DNA of 64,000 nt, taken from positions 62,001-126,000 of the IMG/VR virus record IMGVR_UViG_3300030616_000016. One strand, given 5' to 3'. Below are positions 1 through 44,118 of the stretch, piece after piece (positions within the stretch are counted from its first letter, which is position 1; every line of letters begins with the position of its first letter). The notes beneath the pieces are model-generated. The model ran no database searches and had not been told where the DNA came from. It worked only from the letters and a program-made list of their open reading frames with translations. The position numbers were made by a program, and so were the translations under genes.

Positions 1-304
1 TTGTTATAGTCCGAGGATTTAGTTCAAATAATCCAACACTCCCACATCCAAGACATCTTGGACACTGGATAGGTTTTCTGCGAATCGATCCTTTTCCATT
101 ACACAGATTACAAGTTTGCCTATATCTGAGATTTTGATTTAAGATATGAATCGACTCATTACGTGTCCGATTTTGTGGTTTAGGAGTTGCAGAATCCGTT
201 TTAGATTCCTTTTTAGACTCTTCTTTGCATGAGACTATGATGCTCACAAACATAAACATTGCAAATACTATAGCGATAGCTATTAAAAAACAAATACAAA
301 TCAT
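1..304 (-). CDS. Partial ORF running off the window: N-terminal hydrophobic segment plus DnaJ-type zinc-finger repeats
   Basis: Manual translation from ATG at 304: MICICFLIAIAIVFAMFMFVSIIVS...CNLCNGKGSIRRKPIQCPRCLGCGS; not in the ORF track because it is truncated. Confidence 0.6.
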   Translation of the reverse strand, partial: MICICFLIAIAIVFAMFMFVSIIVSCKEESKKESKTDSATPKPQNRTRNESIHILNQNLRYRQTCNLCNGKGSIRRKPIQCPRCLGCGSVGLFELNPRTIT

Positions 305-326
305 TGTCAAATCCTTTCATAATAAG

Positions 327-1502
327 TTATAATTTACCGGTCATAAATTTTATTGCTTTGCCAAATGAATCAACCTTATTAAGTTCAATTACATTGGCTA
401 CTTGGAACTCATTCCTGCCTTGTTTAGTTTTATTAGTACGTATACGTCCTCTAACAAGACATGTCTTGTTTGCTTCGCCAAGTTCTTCAAGTGTTTTCTT
501 CAAAGATTTCTCTGCTTTTTTATATGAAACAACTGGAGCTATGCTATGTCCATCTTCCATATAAAGAATACGCCTCTTTGATTCTTCAACTATGAATAAC
601 TGGCAGGCAACGGTTACGAACATCCAATGTTGCAATCTGCTATCTTCGCCCATAGCTACTCTAGATGCATCAGATAAAGTTTTAATATCACAATCCTTTA
701 TCCTCTCAAGTCTTTCTTTGTTGTCATCTAGAAATGGTGCGCTTTCAGATAGACTGAAACCAAGATGATAAAGCTCTTCTTTATGATACACATTTTTATC
801 CATAGGTTCACAGTCTAACATTTCTATATTAAATACTTCGTTCTTCTTTTCTTCGTCATTCAGAGTCTTGCGTTTCATTATCTTGTTAGACTCTTTTTTT
901 ATGTTCTCAATATTAATGACAATCCAATTTCTATTTGGCTTACCATCTTCTGTAGTTTCAGCTATTGGATCAAAGAATCCAATCTTTGCCAAAGCATATA
1001 AGGCTGATGTATATATGGTTTTATAATTATTAATATAAGCCCATATAAACTCTGTTAGACTGTCGAATGGTCCATACTTTTTAACCAGTTCTTCAATAGC
1101 TGAGGCAGCATTGCTATTCACATAGCGTATACCATCCATGCCTACTCTTATGCCGTACCCATTCTCTAATGGCTGGCATATTTGTGAGCATCCTTCTATA
1201 CTTGGCGGTCTAACTTCAAGCCCAGCAGATGTCGCTTCTTCAATATATTTACTGACAGTAGATTTGTTGTTGGACCTGGCATTAATCATTGCGCTTATGT
1301 ATTCTTCAAGATATAAGCATTTTAGGTATGCAGTCTTATAGGTAAGATAGGCATAGCTTACACTATGTGAGTTTTTTGATATAAGACCACTAGATAAGAT
1401 ATAATTATGGGGCTCGTTTTCCATTCTAATATTATATAGTCTACGCTTACCTAGTTTTCTTATCTTATTTATCTTTACTTTCTTCAATTGCAAGTTTTGC
1501 AC
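327..1502 (-). CDS. dnaE: DNA polymerase III alpha, C-terminal half, preceded by split-intein C-fragment (IntC about 1371-1487; likely TTG start at 1487)
   Basis: KKVKINKIRKLGKRRLYNIRMENEPHNYILSSGLISKN|SHSVSYAYLTYKTAYLK: intein blocks F/G ending in Asn with +1 Ser, followed by DnaE SH..Y..YLK, EY.SAM and HhH motifs. Confidence 0.93.
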   Translation of the reverse strand: MQNLQLKKVKINKIRKLGKRRLYNIRMENEPHNYILSSGLISKNSHSVSYAYLTYKTAYLKCLYLEEYISAMINARSNNKSTVSKYIEEATSAGLEVRPPSIEGCSQICQPLENGYGIRVGMDGIRYVNSNAASAIEELVKKYGPFDSLTEFIWAYINNYKTIYTSALYALAKIGFFDPIAETTEDGKPNRNWIVINIENIKKESNKIMKRKTLNDEEKKNEVFNIEMLDCEPMDKNVYHKEELYHLGFSLSESAPFLDDNKERLERIKDCDIKTLSDASRVAMGEDSRLQHWMFVTVACQLFIVEESKRRILYMEDGHSIAPVVSYKKAEKSLKKTLEELGEANKTCLVRGRIRTNKTKQGRNEFQVANVIELNKVDSFGKAIKFMTGKL

Positions 1503-2334
1503 GATTGAATTTTCTCCTCATACAAAATTCAGCATTATTATACATGAGTCTTAGCACTTTTGTTAAATCCCTTTCTATATACCACTCTATATAATATAAA
1601 ATACCTCTTTGCTGTGAGGGTATTTTATAATCTATATCTAGTATATGGAATAGCATATATGATATTTGTGATACAACAGATTTCGTTCCTAGAAATCTTA
1701 TGCACCATTTTTTATTAACGCTATTTCTATATAGAGTTCCATCACCATCAAAAAATCCTCTTAGCATATGTCCAAATAAATCTATTTTTATAGGAGGTAA
1801 TACTGCATCATTTGTTTTATCACTTGTAAAACCAAATCTGTAAAGATCTTCAACCATTTTTGGAGATGCTACTGTAATTCTGGACATTGGTTTTACATTG
1901 ACTTCTCTGCCTGCTATTATCTTTTTACCTCCAGGTATTTCTATTATCTTGTTATCAGTTTTCCATTGTTTTTTAACATAGTTGATTATATATCTGTCGC
2001 TCTTGCTAAGAGATAGGGATATTGAATTGTCTTTTTCTACTAACCATCCGTCGGCCAATAGCAATCCAATTACATATGCCTTGTGTTGGTTATCTATTTT
2101 GCTAAAGTAGAAATGATCAACACTATTATATTCCCACTTCTCTCTTGCTCTTATGCCAAATCTATGTAAAAGATCGTAGATAGTTTTAGTAGTCTTGAAC
2201 TTAAAGTTCAAGCTTTTAAGTATCTCGCTACCAGATTTCCCTTTGGTATAGAGTTCTATAATCTTTTTCTCATCTTCTAATGTCATTTTCTTATTTGGCG
2301 GATTTTTTGGTTTGTAGACCATATAATACTCCAA
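1465..2334 (-). CDS. Free-standing LAGLIDADG homing endonuclease with N-terminal HTH-like region
   Basis: Two LAGLIDADG-like motifs, YVIGLLLADGW and MLRGFFDGDG; lies between the two dnaE halves. Confidence 0.88.
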   Translation of the reverse strand: MEYYMVYKPKNPPNKKMTLEDEKKIIELYTKGKSGSEILKSLNFKFKTTKTIYDLLHRFGIRAREKWEYNSVDHFYFSKIDNQHKAYVIGLLLADGWLVEKDNSISLSLSKSDRYIINYVKKQWKTDNKIIEIPGGKKIIAGREVNVKPMSRITVASPKMVEDLYRFGFTSDKTNDAVLPPIKIDLFGHMLRGFFDGDGTLYRNSVNKKWCIRFLGTKSVVSQISYMLFHILDIDYKIPSQQRGILYYIEWYIERDLTKVLRLMYNNAEFCMRRKFNRAKLAIEESKDK

Positions 2335-2361
2335 GATAATATGTATATGTAATACTCACAT

Positions 2362-2390
2362 ATTATATCATATTACTTGTAGCATGTCAA
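2362..2390 (-). promoter_or_regulatory. Consensus sigma70 promoter embedded in the last codons of dnaE-N
   Basis: Minus strand TTGACA-tgctacaagtaatatga (17 nt)-TATAAT, upstream of the endonuclease start at 2334. Confidence 0.8.
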
Positions 2391-5049
2391 GACCCATATT
2401 ATATATTTCTTCTACAGTATGCATTTCATTGTCTGTGCACATAAATTTATGTTCTAGTGATACAATTTCTTTTTTGCCATCTGATAATTCAATTTCGAAA
2501 GCGTCCATTTCACCAGAATCTATTACTTCGACTAGATTGTCATTAACTATATTACCATTTTTGAAGCTTTGGCCTACAATATTTTCACGACCAGAAATAC
2601 TCTTAATGGTTTTATTAATGATTTTTTCACTGTCGTATATTCTAAGCTTAGTTGATGGTGACAAACATGCATTAAAACCATAGCGCGAAAATGTTTCTAT
2701 TTGACTCCATATTCGGGAAGATATATCCTCAGACACGCCAGTATTTTTGGCTAAGTCTGCTATAAACTGAGGTTTAATTTCTGCTATGATATCTGCCTTC
2801 TTCTTACCAACACCGTATCTAAGATAGTCAGCCTTGGCTGCAGTCCATCCACATAAGTCTCTTGCAATCTTGATTATCTGTTCTTGATATACAATGACTC
2901 CATAGGTCTTTTTGAGTACACTACCTAGTTCAGGTGTAATCAGTTCTATATCGTCAATGCCATGCTTACGGTCAATGAAGGATTGAACCATGTTCTTTCC
3001 GTCAGCTCCCTTTGCACCAAGTGGACCTGGTCTATACAAAGCAATCATATCAGATATTTCACTAATACTATCTGGTTTGAGTTGCTTAATGTAGTTGCCC
3101 ATACCACTGGATCCAATTTGGAAGACCTCATTCCTCATACTACCTTCTCTGAGAAATCTAAATACCCTGGAGTCTTCTAGGTCAATCTCTCTAATGTTGA
3201 TTTTGTTATCATGTCTTTCATTAATAAACCTAATAGCTTCATCTACTATATCGAGAGTCTTAAGTCCTAGAAAATCAAGCTTTAATAGCCCAGTGTGTTC
3301 TGCATCATCTTTATCTAGCTGTGTTATGATAGAATATTCACCCTGGGATCTTTGGCATGCTAATGGATGATTTTCTATCAAAGAATCTTTTGATACAATG
3401 ACGCCACCAGCATGCTTACTCCATGCCGTTTTGGCTCCTTCCATCTTTACCATTGTATTGTAATAGTCTTCACGATAAACGTCGTCTTTGAGTGCTTCCT
3501 GCAACTCTGGAACGACCTCATGCAGCTCAGTTATGTTTAAGGTAATGTCTTCGTCATATTTGGCACATATATGTGATCTACAATTAGAATATTGTTCTTC
3601 CCATGATTTGGTTCTTGGGTTAAATATATTGAGCGCTGGGAATACTCGTTTTGCAAGAAAACGAGGCTTCATTGTTTGTAGTGTAGCAACTCTACAAACA
3701 TTGTCTTGTCCAAATAGATCTACGAGATGAGCAAACATCTTAGGCTGTGTACTAGAAGGAAAGTCAATATCAAAGTCCGGTGCACTCTTTCTATCTGGAT
3801 TAAGAAATCTTTCAAAGTATAAGTCATACTTTTCTGGATCAATACTTGTGATGTCAAGAGCGCGAGCTACTCTTGAGCTTGCACCACTTCCGCGTCCGTC
3901 TCCAACGAGCACATCATGATTCTTTGCCCAGTTTACTGATTCCCATGTTATAAGGAAATAGTTATCAAATCCTAAGTCATGTATAACTTTAAGCTCATAC
4001 TCAATTTGGTCTACTAATTTTTGCCTATGTTCTTTGTCTGCATCAGGCCAGGCTTTATCTATACCAGCCATGGCTTGATTTCTTAATTCTTGTTGTGGAT
4101 TTGCTACACCTGGCAACCCAGGTACATCAATATCTTTTTTGGATATACAATAATTGCACTTTTCAGCTACTTCAAGTGTGTTTGTAACAGGCACTTCTGT
4201 TCCAATACACTCAACCATTTCTTCATAGCTTTTGATATATCCTTCTCCGGTACGACCTGTGTATTCTTTGCTGTTATAATATAGCCCATTAGTACATAGG
4301 AATATATCGTGAGCCCTCTTATCTTCTTTATTAAGATAGTGAGCATCACAAGATGCTACTGTTTTGACACCAAATGAATCTGCAATTTCCATTAATTCAT
4401 TTGCTACATCAATTTCTTTAACTTCTTTGTCTCCATACATTCCGTCAAAGCCGTTGTTCATGACCTCAACATAAAAATCATCGCCAAACTCTTTCTTCAT
4501 AAGTTGCATATAATCTACTATGCTTTGTTGAGAGTCTGTCTGTCCACCAAGTAGTCTAGATACTGAGCCTGCAAGAAAGCCACCAAGACACCCAGTTAGT
4601 ACAACTAATCCCTCTTTATGTGCAAATAAATCTTTCAACCATATTCTTGGTTTGGAATAAAAACCATATAAATGGCCCATAGAACTCAGGTATGAAAGAT
4701 TTTTGTATCCTTGTCTTGATTTTGCCAAAAGTGTCAGATGGTAACTTTCTATTTTCTTTACTTCTTCTTTAAGATCTGCGGCAGAAGATGGTACAAATAG
4801 CTCGCCATCGTCATTATAAGCTTTTGGATCTTCATGAGTAATGTATGCTTCCATACCCAGCATTGGTTTGATTCCTGCTTCATTACATGCATCAGAGAAC
4901 TTAACAACGCCAGCAATATTTCCATGATCTGTCATGGCTATTGCTTGTTGACCAAGACTTTTAGCTTTGTTAGCAGCATCTTCTGGCTTGATGATAGAAT
5001 CGTTGAGTGAGAACATAGTATGTAGATGCAAGTTAACAAAATTAGACAT
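2368..5049 (-). CDS. dnaE: DNA polymerase III alpha, N-terminal half (PHP + polymerase core), ending in a 99-aa split-intein N-fragment (2371-2667)
   Basis: PHP motifs HLHTMFS, TDHG, DAHY; core motifs GRGSGASS, PDFDIDF, KLDFLGL, VYQEQI; then YGFNA|CLSPSTK...SLEHKF intein blocks A and B. Confidence 0.96.
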   Translation of the reverse strand: MSNFVNLHLHTMFSLNDSIIKPEDAANKAKSLGQQAIAMTDHGNIAGVVKFSDACNEAGIKPMLGMEAYITHEDPKAYNDDGELFVPSSAADLKEEVKKIESYHLTLLAKSRQGYKNLSYLSSMGHLYGFYSKPRIWLKDLFAHKEGLVVLTGCLGGFLAGSVSRLLGGQTDSQQSIVDYMQLMKKEFGDDFYVEVMNNGFDGMYGDKEVKEIDVANELMEIADSFGVKTVASCDAHYLNKEDKRAHDIFLCTNGLYYNSKEYTGRTGEGYIKSYEEMVECIGTEVPVTNTLEVAEKCNYCISKKDIDVPGLPGVANPQQELRNQAMAGIDKAWPDADKEHRQKLVDQIEYELKVIHDLGFDNYFLITWESVNWAKNHDVLVGDGRGSGASSRVARALDITSIDPEKYDLYFERFLNPDRKSAPDFDIDFPSSTQPKMFAHLVDLFGQDNVCRVATLQTMKPRFLAKRVFPALNIFNPRTKSWEEQYSNCRSHICAKYDEDITLNITELHEVVPELQEALKDDVYREDYYNTMVKMEGAKTAWSKHAGGVIVSKDSLIENHPLACQRSQGEYSIITQLDKDDAEHTGLLKLDFLGLKTLDIVDEAIRFINERHDNKINIREIDLEDSRVFRFLREGSMRNEVFQIGSSGMGNYIKQLKPDSISEISDMIALYRPGPLGAKGADGKNMVQSFIDRKHGIDDIELITPELGSVLKKTYGVIVYQEQIIKIARDLCGWTAAKADYLRYGVGKKKADIIAEIKPQFIADLAKNTGVSEDISSRIWSQIETFSRYGFNACLSPSTKLRIYDSEKIINKTIKSISGRENIVGQSFKNGNIVNDNLVEVIDSGEMDAFEIELSDGKKEIVSLEHKFMCTDNEMHTVEEIYNMGLDMLQVI

Positions 5050-5051
5050 AT

Positions 5052-5771
5052 TTACTCCACTGTTTTCTCAATTAAGCTTTGGATTAGTTTAGGATGTTCG
5101 GTATGTGAATTAACTATCTTCTTATTTGAGCTATCGTACTTGTTCATCCACATTTCAACCACGTCATCTGTTTTTAATTGATCTTGAAGCACAATACTCA
5201 AAAAGTTTCTTACTTTTTGTTCTACTTTGTCTCTTTCTCCAATGTGTCTATAATCATATAGCTCTATTCCTGGAGATGGATACATTATCTTCTTATCATG
5301 TTTATATCTAAACACATGGGAGATAGAATTATCTAACATGTATGAGTCAAAGTCTTTGTAGAATCTATGAATATTCAGATTGATTGCTTTACATGTTCCA
5401 CTATCATTGTTAGACATTAGAGAAAATAGCTCGTAGATATCTTCTTCTTTGAATACTTCGGATCCGTAAAGATATATTACCCAATCCTTTGGCTTCAATA
5501 TCTTTTCTTCAAGCAAACTAAGTTTTTCTCTCTCGCTGTTAAACTTATCTGCAAAGTATGTAAGCTTTCTATCCTCAAGTATTATTTGTGAGTCTTTAAG
5601 GATTTCTATGATCTCATTTGCTTTACATCTCGTACTGTCGGTAGAAGGTCCTGTCTGGTTTCCATCTATAACAACAATTTCATCTACATAAAATGCAATT
5701 GAAGCTATAGAACGTGCAATAAATTCTGATTGATTGTATGCATTATATACTAAGATTATTCTGCTTTTCAT
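5052..5771 (-). CDS. Glycosyltransferase family 2-like protein
   Basis: YNAYNQSEFIARSIASI...VDEIVVIDGN, a GT-A fold N-terminus. Confidence 0.6.
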   Translation of the reverse strand: MKSRIILVYNAYNQSEFIARSIASIAFYVDEIVVIDGNQTGPSTDSTRCKANEIIEILKDSQIILEDRKLTYFADKFNSEREKLSLLEEKILKPKDWVIYLYGSEVFKEEDIYELFSLMSNNDSGTCKAINLNIHRFYKDFDSYMLDNSISHVFRYKHDKKIMYPSPGIELYDYRHIGERDKVEQKVRNFLSIVLQDQLKTDDVVEMWMNKYDSSNKKIVNSHTEHPKLIQSLIEKTVE

Positions 5772-5774
5772 TGC

Positions 5775-6305
5775 TTACCTTTCTTGTGTTGCAGCTAAGA
5801 ATACATCATTATTTTTTAATGCCATGTATGCAGCTATGGAATCTGCTACTGCTTCCTTGGTTTTTTTGGTCCACTTATCAAAGTTTGCAGCTAGTAGGTA
5901 TTTATCTGTGACGGCTTTTATGATATCATCTTTAGACGCAGATGAATTACCAGTTACTGCTTTCTTTAATCCTCTTGGTGTTATATTGGCAACAGGTATG
6001 TTTAATGTCCTGTATATGCCAATAATAGCTCCAATTGTTAATGCAGTTTTTGTAGCAGCAGATGCATTTTGAGATCCAGCTGGCAACTCCATGCATATGA
6101 TGTTTGGCTTGTATTCTTCTATAATACTAAGGATAGTATCAGATATATATCTGACATTACTTACATACTGTTCACTCTTTAAACGAAAGTTATTATCAGG
6201 CACAGTGACAATACATCCACATTTTACAATATTATCTTGATCTACGTCTATAACTGAATAACCAGTGGCGCGTATTGATGGATCTAATCCTAATGCAATT
6301 GCCAT
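5775..6305 (-). CDS. ruvC: Holliday junction resolvase RuvC
   Basis: LGLDPSIRATGYSVI, ICMELP, KKAVTGNSSASKDDI, AVADSIA. Confidence 0.9.
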   Translation of the reverse strand: MAIALGLDPSIRATGYSVIDVDQDNIVKCGCIVTVPDNNFRLKSEQYVSNVRYISDTILSIIEEYKPNIICMELPAGSQNASAATKTALTIGAIIGIYRTLNIPVANITPRGLKKAVTGNSSASKDDIIKAVTDKYLLAANFDKWTKKTKEAVADSIAAYMALKNNDVFLAATQER

Positions 6306-42447: not shown

Positions 42448-44118
42448 TTAGTTTATAAGGCAAAACAGATACTTCTGAATTCTGTCACTGCCTGTTGCAT
42501 ATTCGTCTATCAGGCGATATAAGAGCTTGTCCCAGCCTTTAGATAGCATCAACTGCATTACAGTGATGTATATCCTTGTTCCAGACCTCTTACCACTATT
42601 TGCATATATTCCATCATCAGATAGCTTACGACTGCATGCATGAGTATTTGTCTGGTGGCTGAACTTATCTAATACTATCCAGAACACTTTCCCAGACCAT
42701 GCCTCAACTGTCTGTCCGTTATAAGTATGCTTTTGTGGCTTGCATTCTTTTATAAGAGCAGATGGTATATTCCCATCTTCTCCTTCTAGAAAGTGAGGAA
42801 CGGGCGCCGGCCCTGATTCCTCTGCAATATTATTAAGCATAGCTTCTACTATCTGACCTGGATTCCTACGCTTTAGAGTTGCAAGAGCGTTGGTTACCAC
42901 TTCTGCTGGTTTGCCATCTATCTTAGGCATTTGCTCGTCTGGTATAATATTTACTATACCTTTATTACCGTGACGATTTGTAATTTTGTCGCCACTTCTG
43001 AGAATATGAAATCTCTCGTATTCGACAATAAGTTTTGTACAAACTGTGTTTGCTACTTTTGTTCTTATCTCACTGATATTAGACAGTTTAGCTTCACGCT
43101 TGACATGACATTTAAGCGTGATTGTTTCTTCTCCATCAGAATAAGAACCAATTATCTGATTTGGTCTTACAATGTCTCCGGCTTTGGCTTCCATCTTTAG
43201 GCTTTGTTTGCACCATCCTGGTACTACGAATGTCTGTTTCTCAGGAATGACACATGTCATTTTTCTAGCTGCTGACTTACTCATAACAATCTGTTCTTTG
43301 TATACACCAGGCATGATTGCATGAACTGTAAGTAAGTGCTTGCCATTAAGATTGTTATCATAATCTTCTGGAAACACCATAGGTTTATCTGGACTAACTA
43401 GCTTGCTGGAAGCCTTGAAATTAGATGCAGTGGTTCTGCGGCGATTATATTCTGGTACAATAAGATTCTTATTGAGTATATCGCAATAAACCCGACCTCT
43501 TTTGGTGAAGCATCCAATATCGTTTATTTTGCATTCTTCAGCCATGTACATTGTGCGACCACAATTCCCCGATGACTGACTTATACTTGTCCAATCAAGA
43601 ATGCCTTCTGTATTGAATGGCATAAATTCATCCGTTCGTTCTTGAAATAGCTCTAATGATATTTTGGGTCCATAGTGAGTAGCTATTCCCTTTACGACAT
43701 GAGATAATCTTGAAGTTTTAAGTAAATTATCGAGCTTCATTTGAGCTGTGGTAGAATCTTCTTGATGTCCGAACATAAAGAAGTCTGACAGTTGTGTAGC
43801 ATATGCTTGCTTAATGAATTTAAGAAGAAGCTCGTATGGTGTTGATAAATATGTGTGATTAATATTCATACATCTGTTATTAAAGATTGGCATTGGATTA
43901 AGTGTATAGCATAATTGCCGGCTTATTCCATTTACAGAAAACATACCCTTGTTATCAATCTTAGGTATATTTAGTTTTACGACTGTTTGCATGCTCTGGG
44001 ATGCCTCTTTAACAAGCATTTTTGTATGAAATAGGTCATCATATTCTTCTATATGACAGTCAACAGGCAAACAATTACATATAGGAAACAATCTTGCAAG
44101 ATGAGACTTATTCATCAT
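42448..44118 (-). CDS. Compact RNA polymerase beta-like subunit
   Basis: GMFSVNG; GDKITNRHGNKGIV...MP...G.PAEVV.N...RRNPGQIVE matches the RpoB GDK..RHGNKG block. Confidence 0.88.
   Translation of the reverse strand: MMNKSHLARLFPICNCLPVDCHIEEYDDLFHTKMLVKEASQSMQTVVKLNIPKIDNKGMFSVNGISRQLCYTLNPMPIFNNRCMNINHTYLSTPYELLLKFIKQAYATQLSDFFMFGHQEDSTTAQMKLDNLLKTSRLSHVVKGIATHYGPKISLELFQERTDEFMPFNTEGILDWTSISQSSGNCGRTMYMAEECKINDIGCFTKRGRVYCDILNKNLIVPEYNRRRTTASNFKASSKLVSPDKPMVFPEDYDNNLNGKHLLTVHAIMPGVYKEQIVMSKSAARKMTCVIPEKQTFVVPGWCKQSLKMEAKAGDIVRPNQIIGSYSDGEETITLKCHVKREAKLSNISEIRTKVANTVCTKLIVEYERFHILRSGDKITNRHGNKGIVNIIPDEQMPKIDGKPAEVVTNALATLKRRNPGQIVEAMLNNIAEESGPAPVPHFLEGEDGNIPSALIKECKPQKHTYNGQTVEAWSGKVFWIVLDKFSHQTNTHACSRKLSDDGIYANSGKRSGTRIYITVMQLMLSKGWDKLLYRLIDEYATGSDRIQKYLFCLIN

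Follow-up and report, generated by a model that had tools for sequence, protein, structure and literature searches.

The stretch of DNA analysed here, referred to below as the window, comprises 64,000 nucleotides (nt), bases 62001-126000 of a 231,647-bp virus record of IMG/VR (IMGVR_UViG_3300030616_000016) that is estimated to be 95% complete. Window positions 327-5049 are occupied by three open reading frames (ORFs) on the minus strand: 5049..2368 (893 amino acids, aa), 2334/2322..1465 (289/285 aa) and 1502..327 (391 aa). The first encodes the N-terminal part of DnaE, the alpha subunit of DNA polymerase III, followed by the N-terminal half of an intein (IntN); the last encodes the C-terminal half of an intein (IntC) followed by the rest of DnaE; the ORF in the middle is a free-standing LAGLIDADG gene. 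This anatomy, a split dnaE with an intein half at each broken end and a nuclease gene between them, is hardly open to doubt. The features of the locus are collected in Table 1.

Table 1. Features of the split dnaE locus, in window coordinates.
Feature	Position	Strand	Remarks
dnaE N-extein, 794 aa, end ...FSRYGFNA	2668..5049	-	Pfam PF02811 (PHP), PF07733 (Pol III alpha NTPase), PF17657 (finger)
IntN, 99 aa, Cys1 (CLSPSTK...MLQVI), block B SLEH	2371..2667	-	TGA stop at 2368-2370; Npu DnaE IntN best in PDB
Sigma-70-type promoter-like site, TTGACA-17 nt-TATAAT, 12/12, TG extension	2362..2390	-	overlaps last IntN codons and stop; upstream of endonuclease gene
Free-standing LAGLIDADG gene, 285 aa from ATG 2322 (289 aa if TTG 2334)	1465..2322	-	PF14528 (LAGLIDADG_3), 1.4e-8; phrog_4645, 2.7e-41
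Second promoter-like site, TTAACA-18 nt-TATAAT, 11/12	1537..1566	-	in 3' part of endonuclease ORF, upstream of IntC start; consensus match only, weak
IntC, 44 aa (GTG 1502) or 39 aa (TTG 1487), terminal Asn	1371..1502	-	Npu DnaE IntC best in PDB
dnaE C-extein, 347 aa plus stop, start Ser+1 (SHSVSYAYLTY...), helix-hairpin-helix domain	327..1370	-	PF14579

Both exteins are intact over the full NCBIfam model PRK05673, with DnaE-N covering model positions 5-751 and DnaE-C positions 752-1064; they thus abut exactly as on an intein-less DnaE, with nothing duplicated or missing. The N-extein can be aligned with residues 3-741 of Salmonella DnaE; at the junction A794 faces K742 and Ser+1 faces S743 of the Salmonella protein, and the equivalent placement is obtained with the DnaE of a Moorella phage. 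Removal of the intein would restore the motif YGFNxSHS as YGFNA-SHS and leave extein lengths that sum to 794 + 347 = 1141 residues. The insertion point, YGFNA↓SHS (the arrow marks here and below the position of the intein), lies four residues downstream of the one used by the cyanobacterial DnaE inteins, and the residue at +1 is Ser. The gene is present in a single copy in the 95%-complete genome, and its product is the sole DNA polymerase III alpha subunit encoded there. An intein-less close allele was not found in a single-protein pattern scan of IMG/VR and in word searches.

The kinship of the two intein halves is clear-cut. Among all chains of the Protein Data Bank (PDB), the matches of IntN are limited to those of the Npu and Ssp DnaE inteins (E 1e-7 to 3e-5); gp41-1 follows at E 0.47 as the next type of intein, and no other type falls below E 0.4. 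IntC likewise retrieves the Npu and Ssp IntC (E 0.01-0.1). The score of IntN is approximately 35 bits against Npu and 57-61 bits against the best metagenomic inteins at the same site, and the alignments to the NCBIfam models for the two parts of the split cyanobacterial DnaE extend through the intein parts (PRK09532, positions 2-871; PRK07373, positions 2-197). IntN ends at the canonical Npu split point and carries a net charge of -8 (-12 over its last 60 residues), while the net charge of IntC is +9. IntN corresponds to residues 41-142 and IntC to residues 147-181 of P0022, a contiguous mini-intein inserted at the same site (E 6e-21 and 7e-16; 38% and 55% identity, the latter value holding over a 44-residue IntC alignment, 147-190), and only four P0022 residues lie between the parts matched by IntN and IntC; jointly, therefore, the halves make up a HINT domain that is complete and is divided at the loop in which nucleases are usually inserted. 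The end of IntC reads ...HNYILSSGLISKN↓SHS, in which block F (LYNIRMENEPHNYIL), block G (GLISKN), the terminal Asn and the Ser at +1 can all be recognized. In an alignment of seven loci Cys1 (Cys795, directly after ...YGFNA), the His of block B, the terminal Asn and Ser+1 are invariant; the penultimate residue of IntC, Lys in the window, is K, A or G. By these comparisons IntN and IntC constitute one complete class-1 DnaE-type mini-intein.

The ORF between the halves contains two endonuclease motifs, LLLADGW (Asp91, codon 2052-2050) and FFDGDGT (Asp194, codon 1743-1741), preceded by an additional helical N-terminal region that resembles a helix-turn-helix and appears suited to DNA binding. Its product is approximately 30-45% identical to those of the ORFs found in the gap of six other fractured dnaE loci; across the seven proteins D91-G92 and D192-G195 are invariant, and there are 39 invariant columns. 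An AlphaFold model calculated from the alignment of the seven homologues has a mean predicted local distance difference test (pLDDT) value of 89.3, and a Foldseek search with this model returned the bI3 maturase, I-AniI, I-Tsp061I, I-SceI and the nuclease of the TliVMA intein, all with probability 1.0 and E 2e-8 to 5e-7. On the strength of the model, the middle gene product is predicted to be a monomeric, two-motif LAGLIDADG homing endonuclease. Its relatives in cultured phages, at approximately 26% identity, are annotated as 'intron-encoded endonuclease' of Twort-like Staphylococcus phages.

Several signals for the expression of this gene can be recognized. A Shine-Dalgarno GGAG (2329-2332) is placed 7 nt before its ATG, and its start follows the IntN stop at a distance of only 45 nt, in the same frame. 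The 2362..2390 site is the sole 12/12 promoter-like match in window 1-5400, where by our estimate approximately 0.015 would be expected, and similar TTGA(C/T)A...TATAAT-like pairs are found in the same place in L005, L008 and L009; we infer that it may be the promoter of the endonuclease gene. At its 3' end the endonuclease ORF overlaps the start of IntC by 38 nt in a different frame. GTG 1502 has a GGAG 11 nt upstream, and TTG 1487 is the position homologous to the starts of the relatives. With the IntC start located inside the end of the nuclease gene, translation of the C half may rely on coupled or embedded signals. Hairpins of the kind reported for other fractured genes, sought at the endonuclease and IntC starts, were no better than those of shuffled sequences (z = -0.23 and -1.58, respectively).

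A preliminary description of the locus had proposed a DnaE-N ending in YGFNA plus a 99-aa IntN, an IntC of about 39 aa with a penultimate Lys and a terminal Asn followed by SHSVSY, a junction a few residues downstream of the cyanobacterial site with Ser at +1 at which splicing would restore FNxSHS, and a free-standing LAGLIDADG gene between the halves. The reanalysis upholds each of these statements: IntN occupies 2667..2371 of ORF 5049..2368, IntC has the stated length if TTG 1487 is taken as its start, the junction is exact at the sequence level (PRK05673 751/752 and the Salmonella and Moorella phage alignments), and the middle gene is identified by PF14528, phrog_4645 and the recurrence of the same layout in independent contigs.

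This recurrence was studied in two surveys. An exhaustive HMMER search with IntN retrieved 130 proteins, and insertion sites were counted in the 121 of these scoring above 30 bits. The intein follows directly after the FNx of the DnaE motif in 83 of the 121 protein clusters, and in 77 of these 83 the IntN is C-terminal, that is, split; 11 other inteins are placed after FNxSH, a few at Y↓C, YGF↓C and FN↓C, and 13 in other hosts. The nearest IntN relative of the window is 33-47% identical. Eight contigs with split inteins at the same site were examined: seven have the layout DnaE-N+IntN, LAGLIDADG_3 ORF (277-314 aa), IntC+DnaE-C, and the eighth carries an HNH_3 domain on the C-half protein. In each of the seven loci compared, the nuclease and IntC overlap by 20-41 nt. 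Relative to the window, the N-extein is 32-38% identical, IntN 33-40%, the nuclease 33-45%, IntC 32-51% and the C-extein 24-29%. As judged from these values, the intein cassette is conserved as well as the exteins of a replicative polymerase, or better, which fits either selection or spread by homing.

The second survey, a scan of IMG/VR with an alignment as query, yielded 55 loci, approximately 47 of them at the same site; the following counts of gap ORFs cover all 55. The gap ORF is Vsr-like (DUF559/NUMOD3) in 27 loci (two of them off the FNx↓S site), LAGLIDADG in eight (two of them at FNxSH↓C) and a 503-aa ORF in three; the nuclease is absent in several loci, and six contain contiguous mini-inteins. 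In a tree of IntN the window falls in a clade (Shimodaira-Hasegawa-like approximate likelihood ratio test, SH-aLRT, 92) with the LAGLIDADG-bearing L002, L004 and L008-L010. The type of nuclease is clustered on this tree, LAGLIDADG requiring 3 changes vs 11.5 in shuffles, with the proviso that related rows share labels; as read from the tree, the clustering shows co-inheritance and nothing beyond it. Two further searches were negative: the single-protein pattern scan and word search of IMG/VR gave nothing beyond the phage itself and a single near-identical record, relatives coming to light solely through the exhaustive search and the alignment query, and a scan of GTDB genomes with the IntN alignment found no relative, a result that is weak evidence of absence from cells as it relied on one peptide pattern only.

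Taken together, these results make it quite likely, to the extent that sequences can tell, that the locus is a fractured dnaE joined by a trans-splicing split intein and housing a homing endonuclease gene between the two intein halves. The acidic IntN and the basic IntC would associate and fold into the HINT domain; in trans-splicing, Cys1 would then undergo an N-S acyl shift, trans-esterification would involve Ser+1, and the terminal Asn would cyclise, followed by an O-N shift, to yield a DnaE of 1141 aa with the motif YGFNxSHS restored as YGFNA-SHS. The endonuclease would be transcribed autonomously from its own promoter-like site and would most likely cut the intein-less dnaE of co-infecting relatives at the YGFNxSHS motif, and repair of the break would copy the whole IntN-nuclease-IntC cassette into the cut allele.

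Some observations weigh against this interpretation. Three residues of the intein are non-canonical: the block B Ser, which replaces the Thr present in the aligned relatives and is peculiar to the window (the His of the block being invariant), the block F Asn (Asp in Npu) and the penultimate Lys, the latter two being common to the family. The start codon of IntC is ambiguous among GTG 1502, TTG 1493 and TTG 1487. Finally, counted over the entire region, promoter-like matches number 20, no more than the 24.4 expected from shuffled sequences.

Among the alternatives, the one that survives best accepts a working split intein and questions the nuclease, which would be inactive, or kept only for the IntC translation signals embedded in its gene. 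At all loci the start and ribosome-binding site of IntC lie in the 3' end of the nuclease gene, an arrangement that could by itself preserve the ORF, and there are related lineages that lack the nuclease gene or have one of another type. On the other hand, the motif aspartates are invariant, together with the 39 columns mentioned above, in proteins that share no more than 30-45% identity; the structure model is both confident and complete; the nuclease is conserved at least as well as the exteins; and the clustering of its type on the intein tree points to co-inheritance as a unit. We therefore regard an inactive or merely scaffolding nuclease as unlikely.

A second alternative is that the halves associate without splicing, as a dimerisation module, or that the split dnaE is decaying and non-functional. 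Phage genes split by a nuclease can indeed function unspliced, as in the case of Aeh1 nrdA (PMC2677866), and the three non-canonical residues of the window would agree with a loss of splicing. Against this, the nucleophiles and the terminal Asn have been kept in seven loci whose exteins are only approximately 30% identical; the same block F and block G variants are found in contiguous mini-inteins that belong to this family and occupy this site, such as P0022, which must splice for DnaE to function; and the genome has no other dnaE, with both exteins of this one intact over the full model. Halves that do not splice are, in our judgement, improbable.

Much less credible is a contiguous conventional intein with an in-frame LAGLIDADG domain that sequencing or assembly errors have broken into three ORFs. 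The nuclease ORF does share the frame of IntN, and a genuine contiguous LAGLIDADG intein is present in another gene of the same genome. Fusion of the three ORFs would require, however, the loss of two TGA stops, a normal stop codon in this genome, plus a frameshift; the nuclease gene is equipped with a GGAG-ATG and a promoter-like site of its own; the end of IntN coincides with the split point known from Npu; and the layout of three ORFs, with differing frame relations, recurs in independent assemblies from different samples. The single error fusing the three ORFs, which the preliminary description had named as the outcome that would speak against it, is excluded by the two in-frame TGA stops and the other frame of IntC. 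The least probable explanation, to which we give practically no weight, is a group I intron with an intron-type LAGLIDADG ORF interrupting dnaE: apart from the 'intron-encoded' label of the nearest annotated nuclease relatives in cultured phages, it is opposed by the lack of any Rfam family match in window 1-6000 at E up to 1, by the 45-nt gap and the nuclease/IntC overlap, which leave no room for an intron core, and by flanks that are recognisable intein halves.

Given a fractured dnaE with a trans-splicing intein and a nuclease gene, the family to which it belongs displays a whole homing cycle at one site: full cassette, exchange of the nuclease, loss of the nuclease, and contiguous mini-intein. 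Split inteins without a nuclease gene are found at this site in L030/L031, L035, L037 and L066/L067; in these IntC starts immediately after the IntN stop, or the aligned halves are 42-265 nt apart. Contiguous mini-inteins occur at the same site in L041 and L047 and in proteins P0022, P0114, P0058, P0062 and P0132, nested among Vsr-bearing relatives. The nuclease-less split and the contiguous forms look like different stages of the homing cycle. The 503-aa ORF, which has no Pfam match, lies between the halves in L023:353-1861, L025:3362-4870 and L026:3335-4843, and the inteins concerned group with the clade of the window on the IntN tree. A further variant combines Ser1 (SIL...) with Ser+1 at FNK↓SHA, split in L027, L034, L036 and L044 and contiguous in L056-L059 (positions ~3000-4700); the split ones hold a LAGLIDADG gene between the halves, which in L027 is only a truncated, one-motif ORF of 152 aa.

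Homologous inteins are also found elsewhere within approximately 20 residues of the DnaE motif: at FNxSH↓C (L021, L040, P0044, P0048 and others), AYxK↓C (L069, P0095), YGF↓C (P0107, P0109) and FN↓C (P0085). As an example of the combinations that occur, a three-piece dnaE is present in L005:1311-8453, part of a 189-kb contig, and also in L006 and L007. Its first piece ends in ...GFADY at the Y↓C site, followed by an IntN of cyanobacterial type (6e-17 to Npu); beyond approximately 3.5 kb of unrelated genes lies a gene of 135 aa that consists of an IntC, a four-residue extein (CFNK) and a second IntN, and this precedes a LAGLIDADG gene and then IntC + DnaE-C. P0102 is a second middle piece of this kind. 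In L011:1-11756 the DnaE-N has an extra contiguous LAGLIDADG intein in addition to the terminal IntN, the C-half carries HNH_3, and there are inteins in the neighbouring DnaB and NrdD.

Because L005 joins a cyanobacterial-type IntN at Y↓C with a LAGLIDADG cassette, one may entertain the idea that the YGFNKSHS of phage DnaE is an intein hot spot, in which a single DnaE-type lineage, the cyanobacterial one included, has moved among neighbouring points and exchanged cassettes. Insertion points at Y↓C, YGF↓C, FNx↓S, FNxSH↓S/T and AYxK↓C, and cassettes with LAGLIDADG, Vsr-like, HNH, the 503-aa ORF or none, are on record in these data; we hold the idea to be tentative and rather doubtful. If it were true, the fractured dnaE of phages would represent both a reservoir and a viable intermediate for the origin of the cyanobacterial split DnaE. 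Whatever the history of the site, kinship with a cyanobacterial intein at a distance of only four residues is relevant to a long-standing problem, namely how an essential dnaE could be split without passing through a lethal intermediate.

The gene content of the source genome (G+C approximately 36-38%) points to a jumbo phage of 232 kb as the host of the fractured dnaE, with a RuvC-like resolvase, helicases, an RNA polymerase beta-like subunit and glycosyltransferases. Code 11 fits this genome (211 long ORFs, 86% coverage), in which TGA is an ordinary stop that ends 55 of the 211 long ORFs; a recoding of TGA, by which IntN would be read into the nuclease, was considered and rejected on account of these figures. 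Directly downstream of dnaE-C, a small ORF (window 2-310, minus strand) encodes CNLCNGKG and CPRCLGCG, two motifs of the type CxxCxGxG that recall a zinc finger of the DnaJ type, and after them a hydrophobic tail. Farther along the same strand, an ORF at 30460-31677 matches the phage 'transposase' family phrog_506 (1.5e-133) and is therefore a mobile element within the phage genome, and an ORF at 42448-44118 contains an RNA polymerase beta subunit-like segment (phrog_3295, 2.1e-14), in keeping with a jumbo phage that encodes a multisubunit RNA polymerase of its own. Outside the window, at G000:C1:43593-45647 (plus strand), the same phage has a contiguous conventional intein with an in-frame LAGLIDADG domain within the gene of a Volactin (actin-like) protein; another intein-splicing match, a weak one, is found near G000:C1:180472-180633 (plus strand) in a frame of ~1800 aa.

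From the biological point of view, the replicative polymerase of a jumbo phage would here depend on a selfish element. As a potential tool, the window offers an Npu-like split intein with Ser rather than Cys at +1 and many natural relatives; among these, the Ser1/Ser+1 inteins of L027, L034, L036 and L044 are a candidate pool for protein ligation in oxidising conditions. The preliminary description had considered the pair possibly orthogonal to Npu/Ssp DnaE. This expectation finds no support in an intein that is homologous to them and has the same split point and the same charge polarity; because of the homology and the matching polarity, cross-reaction with the Npu/Ssp halves is possible. Orthogonality to gp41-1, whose polarity is opposite to the cyanobacterial one (PMC2677866), would be more plausible than orthogonality to Npu/Ssp.

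These results can be compared with those known for other inteins and fractured genes. The cyanobacterial split DnaE inteins (Ssp PCC6803 and Npu; PDB 4lx3, 4qfq, 2keq, 1zd7) reside in the same host protein and motif, and are the nearest solved homologues of both halves; in common with the phage intein they have the split point, the sizes of the halves (~100 + 36 aa), the absence of His from the penultimate position, and an acidic IntN with a basic IntC. They differ from it in the insertion point (EY↓CFNKSHS vs YGFNA↓SHS) and in the use of Cys rather than Ser at +1, and while the phage halves are neighbours that flank a nuclease gene, the cyanobacterial ones are found at distant loci of a cellular host. 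Because it is inserted four residues downstream with Ser+1, the phage intein is, on sequence grounds, a homologue of the cyanobacterial DnaE split intein and not an allele of it. The contiguous mini-inteins at FNx↓SHx (P0022, P0114, P0058, P0062, P0132; L041, L047) have the same insertion point and belong to the same intein family; they differ in being single polypeptides that splice in cis and have no nuclease gene.

With regard to the endonuclease, it has the fold of I-AniI, the bI3 maturase, I-SceI, I-Tsp061I and the TliVMA nuclease domain, with two LAGLIDADG helices that carry acidic residues in a pair of alpha-beta-beta-alpha-beta-beta-alpha domains; it differs from those enzymes in sequence (only 14-17% identity), in its extra N-terminal helical region, and in being encoded by a separate gene inside a split intein, while those enzymes are intron-encoded or form an in-frame part of an intein.

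Fractured genes were described in ocean metagenomes by Dassa et al. in 2009 (PMC2677866): gp41-1, NrdJ-1, IMPDH-1, NrdA-2 and DnaE-1, -2 and -3, the three dnaE loci lying at sites other than the cyanobacterial one and all of the genes stemming from metagenomic DNA of phage-like character. The locus of the window conforms to the definition given there, with adjacent host halves on the same strand, intein halves, and an endonuclease ORF between them; as in those genes, the order is N half + IntN, free-standing nuclease, IntC + C half, on one strand and with overlapping frames. It differs from them in its nuclease, which is LAGLIDADG instead of GIY-YIG or Vsr-like; the word LAGLIDADG is absent from the 2009 paper, and a search of the literature found nothing specific on the FNx↓SHS site or on a LAGLIDADG gene within a split intein. 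Since most of the IMG/VR loci at FNx↓SHS carry a Vsr-like nuclease, one of the three dnaE sites of Dassa et al. is probably FNx↓SHS, and the extra in-frame C-terminal intein part mentioned for their DnaE-1 locus (PMC2677866) may be the same kind of middle piece as that of L005. The earlier statement that this gene arrangement is known from phage metagenomes is thus borne out, and the claim of a new trans-splicing pair stands in part: the locus is new in its sequence, as can be seen from the distance to the nearest IntN, while its site and architecture are widespread in phage metagenomes, with fractured dnaE genes known since 2009.

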